Part shown: positions 33,904 through 56,401 of the stretch, piece by piece
How positions within the stretch are numbered: the stretch's first letter is position 1
Layout of the letters: every line of letters starts with the position of its first letter
Origin: Trichoplax adhaerens
Taxonomy: Eukaryota; Animalia; Placozoa
Direction of reading: 5' to 3'
Assembly: GCF_000150275.1 (NCBI RefSeq)
Contig: NW_002060952.1
Coordinates: forward strand, 84,482-148,481
Length of the DNA stretch: 64,000 nt
Notes under the pieces: generated by a model
Seen by the model: the letters and a program-made list of their open reading frames with translations, nothing else
The model's database searches: none
Told to the model about the DNA's origin: nothing
Made by a program: the position numbers and the translations under genes

Positions 33904-36900
33904 TTAGTTTTCACCTTCTTTTACCCTAGTCTTCTTAAATTGTTGCACTTCCTCGAATATTAGTTCTATTTTTTAAAAAGCAAATGTAGCTTAGTTTCTG
34001 TGATATTACCTCAGTAATATTTCTACTTTATACATTAAAATGATAGTCAAAATAGGAATAAACCTTTCAGACGATCCTTTGGCAAGTCATCGAATTCAGT
34101 ATCAAAGCGAAACGGTTCTTCTGCGATCGGCTGATAGCACAGGCAAAAAAGTTCGCTTATTATTTTGACTATACTAAAGTTATATACAATATCTACTACA
34201 GTCGTCTTTAGCAATAGTATTCAAATTATCACATTGTCATTACCTCATCGGAAGGATCATAATATTGTTCTAAATAAGAATGAGCTAAAGCTTCTTCAAC
34301 TGTAATTCTTTTGTTTGGATTGAAGGTTAGCATTTTGTCAAGAAGATCAAGCGCTACATTAAAAGGATAAATAAATGTATGATTAAATTTGATTCGCTAA
34401 ACCGGTACTTTCCTATTTATATGTTTTCTGTAGCACAGTTAAAAACCTCTTGAATCTGCCTTTGGGAATAATTTGATCCAGGGCATGGTAGCATTATATG
34501 GTAAGGATTGAATATATCCGCGAGCCTGATATAATAATAGTTTACATTATCACACTGTTTAAAAACCACACTCTGAAGATTAATTAACAAATACATCGCT
34601 CTACCTTTTCGTTCCTGATACATTGCAAATCTTCCATGTTAGGGGTTCCCAAAACTTGTAAAATATGATTTAACTGATCGAGATCTGTTGGATATTAGTT
34701 AAAGAAAGCATACGAAGAATCGATATGTAGAAATATGCCCAATTAAAAATTTAATCAGATAGCGTATTTGACGGATACAATGCTTTCCAGGAAAGATAGG
34801 ACGATTAGATAACATTTCAGCCAATATGCAACCAACTGACCAAATATCAACTAGATTATAAAATAAATCTTTAGTGCATACTAAACGAGAATAATATAGT
34901 TGATAGATACCACATTGTAACTGCTTATAAGTCAATTAACTTCATTGTATACGAGCGAGTGTACGTACTTGATTTAGTGTATCCTTTCGAATTCAGCATA
35001 ATCTCTGGTGCACGATACCAACGAGTCGCAACGTATTCCGTTAGAAATCCAGTGTGATCATGCTCTGGATCTGCTACACGGGCCAATCCAAAATCGCATA
35101 TCTACGATAAATTAGGATTATGTGTTATATTACCAGTTGCATAAAATTTAAGCCACAGCACAACAAATTGAAGATAAGGCGATGGGTATTCAGATGTAAA
35201 TCTAGCTAATGCAACTCGAAAGACTTAAAAATACGCGTACAACGTTCAAATTAAAACCCCTAGGATATTTATAAAATGCAACACTAAAGAGAACACAGGT
35301 TCAGCGAAGGTTAGAATTCTAATATCAACTAACAATCAAGCAGCTTCGTTTTGATATCGTGAAAAGATACGGGAATTAAACACAGCATGATGACAACATC
35401 ACATCACGATGTTGACTACTGGATAGTACAGTATATTAATAATACTACGTAGTAGTACTTTTTAAATTAATACGTATTTCACTGTCAATTTACAAGGGTA
35501 ACATGATGTTTTCTTATACGCGCAATACTTAAATATTAAAAAATCATCACTTAAGGACTAAATCGTTTCAAACTATAAAATATAGTATCAAAGATAATTG
35601 TAATAGAAAATCTGAATATTTTACTAGTTAACGATAACCTATATGTCATTAAGGTGCAAAATTTATTACAAACTACAAAAAAAATGAAGAAAATAATGTT
35701 ATTATTTAATTATATTATAAAATATATGACAGCATACGGCTAGAATTACTTCCTATTTTTTATTACAGTAATGGCAAGATATAATAGGTAATGGTCACTT
35801 TCTTACAAAATAAAACAAGGACTGAGATGTGTCATTTTAAATAGTAGTGAATAATTAATATGGTAACATAAGTAAAAATTTTGTAATTGAGTATTCGAAG
35901 GATATGATCATTGATCCATATCTTATACAACACTGGCTCTCTCCATTATATACGTATACAAGTGAATAGATATACGCATATTGTACTACGATTAGATTGA
36001 ATAGTGTACAACTGTGTATTGAAATCTATTCCTTTATTTGTATTTATAATTATTATCATTTAGTTGCGATTACTTATATTTAACTGACTAAGTAGAGAAT
36101 ATTTAACTTTGAATGTATAGAGTACGCGTTGGAATAACTGTACTGCATTAGAGTCATAATTTTAGTTTTGTTTACTGAATACAATAAAAAAGTTTCTGCA
36201 ATTATACAAATTTATAAATTCTATAAATATTACTACTATTTCACAACCAAGTCTTTATCATATTGATTATTTTTCACTAGAAGTGAAAATAAATTTGGCA
36301 ACATAAATTTTTACGGTTACCTTTAAATCGCAGGTTGTATTTAAGAGTAAGTTGCTTGGTTTAAGATCACGGTGCAAGACATTGGCCGAGTGAATATATT
36401 TTAGGCCACGTAAAATTTGATATAGGAAGTAGCATACATGATCATTACTTAATCTTTGCGTTTTAAGTAACTTGTATAAATCCGTTTCCATTAGTGCTTG
36501 AACGATGTAACTATGGGTAAAATTAAGTTAAGGAAATAGAGCAAGACCGGGAGCAATAACAGGAGGCAAAGAGAAATAGTAAACAATAGAGTTAGAGATA
36601 AATAAAAAATAAGTTGACAAAAGAAATCATTGATTTCCTTTAATAGATTTACTGTAACAGAAAACGAACTTTTTCAACCTGCTTCTAAAATTAATATTTG
36701 AGTACTATTATAGCTGTAATAAATAAAAGATAGTGCTTTTCAATCAATAACTAGATACAGAGCTATTTAATTTAAATGCAACTATAGTACAGTAAAATAG
36801 GTAGCTATTTCATATCGGCGATATCAGACATATACACGTGCATATAATATACAGTACAGTACACAAACCGCATTTTCTAATTTAAAAATATTATTATGTA

Positions 36901-54700: not shown

Positions 54701-56401
54701 TGTAATATAGATAAAACCTATTACAAGCAGCAGGCAATAGTCAATAAAGGGGAATTGAAATATTAACAAATCTTTACCTCATAAGAAAATACATTTCCAG
54801 ACGTTTTGATAGCTATAATATGGGAATTTTTGGTAAAAACTTTGAATGTTACTGGGCAGTGATAACTTCCTTCTGAGTTTTTATGGAATACAAGCTTTGT
54901 TAAAGATTTCGGATCTAAAACCTATATATATATGCAATTGATAAGTACATTAGTAAGACGTAGTAATCCATGACCATTTAACTTTGTAAAGGTGTATTAA
55001 TAGAAGATGATTATGGTGCTTATCGGTATCGGTAGTACAGTATATCTAAAGATGGTAGTTTAGTGTTACCTGTCCAGTAATGGGATTGTGGCCGTATTTT
55101 TTTAGATAGGGGACAATGTTCCTAGTATCATATGGACCATTAAAGAAAGCAAGATTATTAGTAATGCAATAGGTAAAAACTCACTATGCACACAGTATAA
55201 TATGAATTTAATATAGTACTGCATCATATAGTCAATGGTTGAATATGATACTAATACAACAATAAAACTTACAGCAAATCAAAAATAATTCCTTCGGATG
55301 TACATACTGGGTACTCAAATGGCTGCAATGATAAGCTAAGTAAAAAATTTTAGAAAAGGCAAAATAAGAAAATTGATGGCATTAAATGGTACAGCACGAG
55401 AAGAGAAATTGGAGAAGTTTCAACTTTAGCTTGATGAACACATAATTGGTTCTTGAAATTGAAAGAGTATATATAAATTTTAGCGTAAAAAAACTACTCT
55501 GGCGCGTGTTTATTGATATTGATACACGAGTTTACTGATGTACTTAGCCAATTATAATATAAACGTGTACATTGGAAGTTATTTTATGCTCAAACCTGCA
55601 ACAATCGAAGGGTAACCGTCTAAATTCTGCATTTTCTCCGGTTACACGCTCTAGGTAATCAAGCAATCAAGACAGTGATGATGCTGCTAGAATAGCGCGA
55701 TGTACATATAGTTCATCAGTACTGTATAATACAGTAGCGCACAAAATCGATCAATTCTGCAAATATGACTGATCAAAGTAGTTGGGCAAATTGTCCTGTG
55801 CTGTTCATGGTAAGTGCAGTAGTCAATAACAAATATATTGCTCGTATGACATCATCTACGATCATCTACAGCTACTGTAGGTAGGCCTCTAAAAACTAGT
55901 TTGACAATTGAGTACATTACTATGTAGATTTTGTACATTCCTAACATTGGGTTGTAACGATTTCAGCTAATTACAGTAGCTGTGTATAGGGTTAAGAAGC
56001 CATGCACTACATGGGTAAGCATATCCATGAATATACTACAAGTTTCCTTGCAAAGATAATGAAATGTTGCAACGGTTACCACTTTTTTCGTATGTAAACA
56101 ACATCATCCTTTCTTACCTTTGCGCTTGCCTCCGTAAAAGGTCGTCCACTCATTGCTAGTGATATACCTAGGTGTACAAAATAATAATATGCCTCGTTTA
56201 CTTCAAATAGTCAGTGTTTTGCAGCCTAGTGAGCGTGATTATATCCTATCGTATTGCAATTGCTGTCTTTGTAACCAAGTTGAACGACTCTGCTTCCATT
56301 ATGATAATTTAGGCAAGACGAATCAAATGATGCTATCAACATGATGACATTATTATTATTTCAGCTTACATTTTATCTTTCTGATGTTGTTTCTTGCCCA
56401 T
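51717..56401 (-). CDS. PPIL2: U-box/cyclophilin protein PPIL2 (Cyp60), about 23 short exons
   Basis: Starts [18 protein letters not shown]. Contains [45 protein letters not shown], the cyclophilin motifs [25 protein letters not shown] and [10 protein letters not shown], and ends FNDFSHW*. Confidence 0.95.

Follow-up and report, generated by a model that had tools for sequence, protein, structure and literature searches.

The ERK, YPEL and PPIL2 genes of Trichoplax adhaerens

We analyzed a stretch of 64,000 nucleotides from the placozoan Trichoplax adhaerens, called the window here, which corresponds to positions 84,482-148,481 of a 2,472,865-bp scaffold (NW_002060952.1), the tenth largest of the assembly searched (105,631,681 bp, 1414 contigs). 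The sequence is rich in A+T (GC content of about 29-43%, taken in 2-kb windows) and in introns. It harbors three consecutive genes, an ERK-type MAP kinase gene on the minus strand, a yippee-like gene (YPEL) on the plus strand and a PPIL2 gene on the minus strand, which a first-pass annotation had matched to the MAPK1-YPEL1-PPIL2 cluster of human 22q11.2. Gene coordinates and strands were read exon by exon from the stop-free frames of both strands, and all homology searches were run per exon. This reading recovered the three genes at the coordinates and on the strands that the first-pass annotation had given them, with no intervening gene (Table 1). ERK and YPEL lie head-to-head, with their start codons 4.36 kb apart, and YPEL and PPIL2 lie tail-to-tail, with their stop codons approximately 2.4 kb apart.

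The first exon of the kinase gene carries the ATG at 42074, and the last exon, with the stop codon, lies at approximately 33904-33970. Two exons matched the Pfam Pkinase family, and the exon at 34928-35101 harbors the TEY motif of the activation loop. In a PDB search, the exon at 36270-36527 was identical to human MAPK1 at 61 of 65 residues (94%; 126 bits), with MAPK3 next (124 bits), and the best 60 matches were nearly all MAPK1 or MAPK3 chains, MAPK1 being first. Based on the TEY motif and on the top similarity to ERK1/2, the window kinase is predicted to be the ERK1/2 (MAPK1/MAPK3) orthologue.

The YPEL gene consists of four coding exons (46433-46534, 47222-47265, 48828-48939 and 49226-49357). 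Its full-length relatives were reached by a region search with a single-exon open reading frame (ORF) fragment and then with the Acropora protein. The four exons were colinear over the entire core of about 112 residues of ten yippee-like 1/2 proteins, and identity to the "yippee-like 1/2" proteins of 10 animals, taken as per-exon sums, was 71-79%. "Yippee-like 1" and "yippee-like 2" are the names given by NCBI to proteins with this exon type in insects, corals, molluscs, echinoderms and vertebrates. Exon 3 was 44% identical to human YPEL5, and the Trichoplax genome contains a distinct YPEL5-type gene (scaffold C1413:2214926), one exon of which was identical to YPEL5 at 20 of 23 residues. The window gene is thus not of the YPEL5 type, and its sequence places it in the YPEL1-4 subfamily. 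At the DNA level, similarity between the window YPEL and 15 other YPEL loci was found only in the four exons.

The PPIL2 gene has a short N-terminal first exon with an ATG at approximately 56401 and a stop codon just below 51720, and its exons are colinear on a single strand. The exon at 54766-54921 had human PPIL2 (residues 83-130) as its sole significant match in the PDB; the same exon gave a weak match to the Rtf2 RING finger, a label also carried by the vole PPIL2 gene. The downstream exons matched the cyclophilin family (PF00160). With its N-terminal U-box region ahead of a cyclophilin domain, the gene is identified, by predicted domain content, as PPIL2. ERK and PPIL2 are therefore the orthologues expected by the first-pass annotation, given the 61/65 exon identity to MAPK1 and the exclusive PDB match to PPIL2.

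All three genes derive from multigene families, so we considered whether the window might carry paralogues instead (a YPEL5-type gene, another MAP kinase and another cyclophilin), with an only apparent match to 22q11.2. Along these lines, a genome-wide scan with the Pfam yippee family missed the split YPEL gene of the window and found Mis18-like and cereblon-like loci instead. However, the near identity of the ERK exon to MAPK1, the similarity of the window YPEL to YPEL1/2-type proteins, the presence of a separate YPEL5-type gene on C1413 and the U-box-region exon that matches nothing but PPIL2 in the PDB all speak against it, and we regard such non-orthology as extremely improbable. The additional yippee-fold loci were an intronless Mis18-like ORF of 165 aa (C1413:7420590) and a cereblon-like exon (C1412:2340953).

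Gene order in other animals and age of the block

Metagenome contigs were scanned with a YPEL alignment, which returned 80 loci. One of them also carries ERK and PPIL2, namely, JAAGOD010047273.1, a contig of 5085 bp in total. It is part of JAAGOD000000000 (PMC8518922), the metagenome assembly of a tedaniid demosponge, "TC," from a vent in the Okinawa Trough. On its minus strand, the contig carries ERK (ATG at 1890) and PPIL2 (approximately 2900 to the contig end); between them, YPEL occupies 2173-2712 of the plus strand. The order and all three orientations are thus identical to those of Trichoplax, again with no intervening gene, and the start codons of ERK and YPEL are 282 bp apart. In a comparison of the 20-kb Trichoplax block with this contig, every DNA match was exonic, colinear and on the same strand. 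The ERK piece gave its top score with MAPK1, and the PPIL2 piece matched PPIL2 only. The YPEL was 80-83% identical to YPEL1/2-type proteins and had the same three intron positions as the Trichoplax gene, with introns of 54-78 bp. From the provenance of the sample and the compact, short-intron gene structure, the contig much more probably stems from the host sponge than from anything else. On another metagenome contig (L098), the kinase adjoining the yippee gene was CDK-like rather than ERK.

The comparison also revealed details of the introns. The ERK intron following the F-P-G-K-H codons (window 34685-34778, minus strand) combines a donor of the U12 type (GTATCC) with a CTTTAAC/CTTAAC-like branch site near the acceptor, and the same signals occur at approximately 800-925 (minus strand) of JAAGOD010047273.1, so that both the position and the type of this intron look conserved between Trichoplax and the contig. 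Trichoplax has another GTATCC donor after ERK exon 3 (approximately 37055); the corresponding intron is missing from the contig. In the YPEL gene of the window, an 18-nt near-copy (48805-48822) of the 3' end of exon 2 (47246-47263, encoding Y-L-F-N-S) precedes the exon 3 acceptor by about 5 nt, in frame, and has no counterpart in JAAGOD010047273.1. Intron 2 additionally contains three tandem copies of a 115-bp repeat (48008-48355, 96% matches), and at the oyster YPEL locus, an exon-1-like segment occurs in three tandem copies (L006, 10048-10247).

We then compared the block to the vertebrate arrangement. The human layout was taken from Busca et al. 2015 (PMC4559367) and from the vole as a proxy, and vertebrate DNA was checked pairwise, YPEL1/PPIL2 in the vole and ERK/ypel1 in the lumpfish. 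In the vole, YPEL1 lies tail-to-tail, across a gap of 2.4 kb, with a gene that encodes Rtf2 and cyclophilin domains and whose exons match the PPIL2 exons of the window. In the lumpfish, ypel1 is preceded on its own strand by a gene for a 369-residue kinase, which ends 6 kb before it; the last exons of the kinase gene match ERK exons of the window, one of them at 87.5% identity. For both human and zebrafish, Busca et al. 2015 (PMC4559367) reported ypel1 and ypel3 to lie downstream of, and co-directional with, mapk1 and mapk3, respectively, and they drew on this linkage to argue that ERK1 and ERK2 originated when a chromosome segment was duplicated. The arrangement that the first-pass annotation had given for human is thus borne out by the vole, the lumpfish and the published data.

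The mammalian PPIL2-YPEL1-MAPK1 cluster therefore contains the same three orthologues as the Trichoplax block, in the same order and with nothing between them. The tail-to-tail YPEL/PPIL2 pair is also shared, its two genes being about 2.4 kb apart in Trichoplax as in the vole, and the ERK-YPEL linkage of the vertebrate mapk1-ypel1 and mapk3-ypel3 regions (PMC4559367) is common to Trichoplax as well. Since it occurs in two paralogous vertebrate regions, this linkage predates their duplication. In contrast, ERK is co-directional with YPEL and upstream of it in fish and human, whereas the two genes are head-to-head in Trichoplax and in JAAGOD010047273.1. Moreover, the human neighbors YDJC, SDF2L1 and TOP3B have no counterparts on the scaffold of the Trichoplax block.

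The surroundings of YPEL1-4-type genes in further animals were inspected over 10 kb on each side and by tblastn with ERK, PPIL2 and TTC28 exon pieces of the window. Neither ERK nor PPIL2 was found within 10 kb of YPEL in Acropora digitifera, three sea anemones, Clytia, Daphnia magna, Bombus impatiens and Styela clava, and tblastn gave the same result. The YPEL neighbors in A. digitifera were a DEP-domain gene and an ion channel; those in the anemones were a gene of approximately 830 residues, with an ion-channel domain where annotated, and an astacin-type gene, which was called in two of them. In the oyster and four sea stars, the 10 kb on either side of YPEL contained no other gene at all, so that these species are uninformative for adjacency. 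Hence, the block is present in the placozoan, the demosponge-metagenome contig and vertebrates and absent beside YPEL in the four anthozoans, the hydrozoan Clytia, the two arthropods and the tunicate. The first-pass annotation had made the adjacency in intermediate lineages a test of common origin: taken alone, the sampled cnidarians, arthropods and tunicate, which lack it, would speak in part against such an origin, whereas the sponge-metagenome contig has it in an identical arrangement.

The ion-channel gene lies downstream of YPEL in both Acropora (L005) and one anemone (L015), and the other two anemones (L013 and L014) have an unannotated gene of similar length in the same place. The YPEL-ion channel pair may represent an anthozoan-specific microsynteny that replaced the ancestral neighbors.

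Several of our observations weigh against an ancient, retained block. The absence of ERK and PPIL2 near YPEL in the eight sampled species requires several independent losses. An extended synteny had to be rejected, as other Trichoplax scaffolds carry YDJC, MVP, the TOP3 genes and an SDF2-like MIR gene, and the conserved unit is thus limited to the three genes. The taxonomic origin of JAAGOD010047273.1 is based on provenance and gene structure rather than on a marker gene. Finally, no conserved noncoding sequence was found between the window and either JAAGOD010047273.1 or the 15 other YPEL loci, and the ERK-YPEL spacer of Trichoplax, at 4.4 kb, is not promoter-sized.

One could ask whether the three genes were joined independently in placozoans and vertebrates, by chance or convergence, out of a common ancestral linkage group. 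Such a group is suggested by the presence of ERK, YPEL, PPIL2 and TTC28 on a single human chromosome arm, and the lack of adjacency in the sampled cnidarians and protostomes would fit independent joining. However, the same order and the same YPEL/PPIL2 orientation, without intervening genes, are found in three lineages, and JAAGOD010047273.1 shares all three orientations with Trichoplax. By our own rough estimate, if genes were ordered at random in a linkage group of about 500 genes, the entire genome should share some 0.05 such ordered triples or fewer with human, and finding the triple independently a second time would be far less likely. The presence of the block in a placozoan, a probable demosponge and vertebrates makes chance reassembly very unlikely; we give it hardly any credence.

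Given the sponge contig, the absence of the adjacency in cnidarians, arthropods and the tunicate is better read as repeated loss. We thus consider it very probable that the block of ERK1/2, a YPEL of the 1-4 type and PPIL2 was present in the common ancestor of demosponges, placozoans and bilaterians, that it was kept in Trichoplax, in the demosponge-derived contig and in vertebrates, and that it was broken in many lineages. This is in line with the claim of the first-pass annotation that the block has been retained since early animal evolution, which is backed by the identical arrangement in JAAGOD010047273.1. Because Trichoplax and the contig share the same layout, the head-to-head ERK/YPEL arrangement, and not that of vertebrates, is probably ancestral. 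In the ancestor, transcription of ERK and YPEL would then have run outward from a short 5' spacer common to both, YPEL and PPIL2 would have converged over a very short 3' spacer, and on the vertebrate line, ERK would have been inverted while remaining beside YPEL.

Flanking genes and spacers

The gene directly after PPIL2, with which it is head-to-head, is TTC28-like. TPR families matched the window at 60652-60936 and 61865-64000, and the TPR array continues beyond the window end (downstream region L008:2137-4143), where the gene has an open frame of 1381 aa. A CHAT domain (PF12770), split by one intron, follows at L008:3650-4143 and 4296-4847. The gene has the architecture of TTC28, and its putative orthology is judged by this domain architecture alone. 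The TPR array and the CHAT domain agree with the claim of the first-pass annotation that TTC28 follows the block directly. The link that it drew to human 22q, in contrast, is reduced to linkage at the chromosome scale: TTC28 adjoins the block in Trichoplax, whereas human TTC28 lies megabases away from PPIL2-YPEL1-MAPK1.

Table 1. Genes and spacers of the window (positions in the window; a dot marks features without a strand).
Feature	Position	Strand	Remark
ABC-transporter ATPase	1342-3019	+	by eye/Pfam
MND1-like gene	~6800	-	by eye/Pfam
RAB35-like GTPase	11403-13551	-	by eye/Pfam
ABHD11-like hydrolase	17861-19832	-	by eye/Pfam
Large gene, weak "moonraker" match	21277-28000	+	by eye/Pfam
ERK1/2-type MAP kinase gene (predicted)	33904-42074	-	~11 coding exons
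ERK-YPEL spacer	42075-46432	.	4.36 kb between divergent start codons
YPEL1-4-type yippee-like gene (predicted)	46433-49357	+	four coding exons
YPEL-PPIL2 spacer	49358-51716	.	~2.4 kb between convergent 3' ends
PPIL2 gene (U-box + cyclophilin; predicted)	51717-56401	-	at least 18 coding exons
PPIL2/TTC28-like spacer	56402-60651	.	between divergent genes
TTC28-like gene, 5' part (TPR array)	60652-64000	+	runs on past the window end

The window contained no match to an Rfam RNA family and no tRNA, and the YPEL-PPIL2 spacer (49358-51716) showed neither a conserved ORF nor an RNA family or tRNA. Tandem repeats occur in the ERK-YPEL spacer at 42611-43018 (149 bp, 2.6 copies) and at 44800-45057 (137 bp, 1.9 copies), and in the PPIL2/TTC28 spacer at 57327-57692 (91 bp, 4 copies). 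Additionally, GC-richer tracts dense in TACAGTA/TACTGTA were seen at approximately 8-10 kb, 14-16 kb, 43-46 kb and 57 kb of the window. They sit in spacers, including those at the 5' ends of ERK/YPEL and of PPIL2/TTC28, and also around the RAB35-like gene.

The genes upstream of the block were identified partly by eye and partly with Pfam (Table 1). The human regions of RAB35 (12q24) and ABHD11 (7q11.23) are paralogous to 22q11/16p11, in keeping with a synteny at the chromosome scale.

Possible reasons for retention and significance of the block

According to Irimia et al. 2012 (PMC3514665), a 5'-5' arrangement prevails among the ancient gene pairs that stayed conserved; the authors attributed many pairs to co-regulation and others to regulatory blocks around developmental genes. 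A genomic regulatory block was rejected for ERK-YPEL-PPIL2: none of the three genes encodes a transcription factor and no conserved noncoding elements were found, so that the block is not a case of this kind.

The 5'-5' layout of ERK and YPEL is, on the other hand, typical of the co-regulated class of Irimia et al. 2012 (PMC3514665). Under selective constraint, ERK and YPEL would form a co-regulated divergent pair on one bidirectional promoter, with a functional link between YPEL1-4 and ERK signaling. The orientation common to Trichoplax and JAAGOD010047273.1 is consistent with this, and the 282-bp spacer of the latter has the size of a bidirectional promoter, which makes ERK/YPEL co-regulation plausible in non-bilaterians. 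Furthermore, the ERK-YPEL linkage was retained in both paralogous regions of vertebrates (Busca 2015, PMC4559367), and a link of YPEL4 via MVP to the Elk-1/ERK pathway has been reported (Liang 2010, as reviewed in PMC5995765). However, ERK and YPEL are co-directional in vertebrates, where a bidirectional promoter cannot be the conserved constraint. In addition, the pair is separated in cnidarians, arthropods and the tunicate, its intergenic region showed no conserved sequence, and co-regulation leaves the convergent YPEL-PPIL2 pair unexplained. Selective constraint on the divergent pair is thus a possible but rather unlikely explanation for the block as a whole. More doubtful still is the stronger proposal that ERK and YPEL1-4 have been a divergent pair on one bidirectional promoter since the metazoan ancestor, reflecting an ancient coupling of YPEL to ERK signaling, with PPIL2 held in place by 3'-3' packing.

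We favor a mostly passive retention, aided by tight packing, with ERK/YPEL co-regulation as a plausible additional factor. YPEL and PPIL2 are convergent, so that no common promoter is possible for them, and their 3' spacer of 0.2-2.4 kb leaves little room for a harmless breakpoint. The neutral part of this explanation would be that short spacers flanked by essential genes offer only a small neutral target for breakpoints. For ERK and YPEL, the use of one bidirectional promoter region in non-bilaterians would be probable.

Blocks of unrelated genes that have stayed adjacent for more than 600 million years were likewise described by Irimia et al. 2012 (PMC3514665) and Robert et al. 2022 (PMC8851819). 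The latter study defined conserved blocks by at least three orthologues with at most five intervening genes, common to distant taxa, and inferred only 34 of them at the metazoan ancestor. In Trichoplax and JAAGOD010047273.1, ERK, YPEL and PPIL2 are three orthologues with no intervening gene, and this trio thus qualifies as a block in the sense of Robert et al. 2022 (PMC8851819). The gene names ERK, YPEL and PPIL2 were absent from the supplements of Robert 2022 and Zimmermann 2023 that we examined, and we found no paper on ERK-YPEL-PPIL2 across animals or on YPEL and animal microsynteny, in a search that most survey gene lists lay outside of. Busca et al. 2015 (PMC4559367) covers vertebrates and an amphioxus linkage group and mentions neither PPIL2 nor placozoans or sponges. 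The vertebrate ERK-YPEL linkage is therefore already published (PMC4559367), whereas the deep three-gene block is new or newly documented. It is one example of a known phenomenon, and if it is already contained in the supplement of a survey, our finding is a mere confirmation.

Deeply conserved neighborhoods of unrelated genes are rare, and they serve both the reconstruction of ancestral genomes and the search for hidden regulatory or functional links. The block described here extends the known mapk1-ypel1/mapk3-ypel3 paralogy of vertebrates and pairs ERK, a central signaling kinase, with YPEL, a highly conserved protein of unclear function. If the shared ancestral promoter were true, it would provide a concrete and testable reason to seek a functional link between YPEL and ERK.

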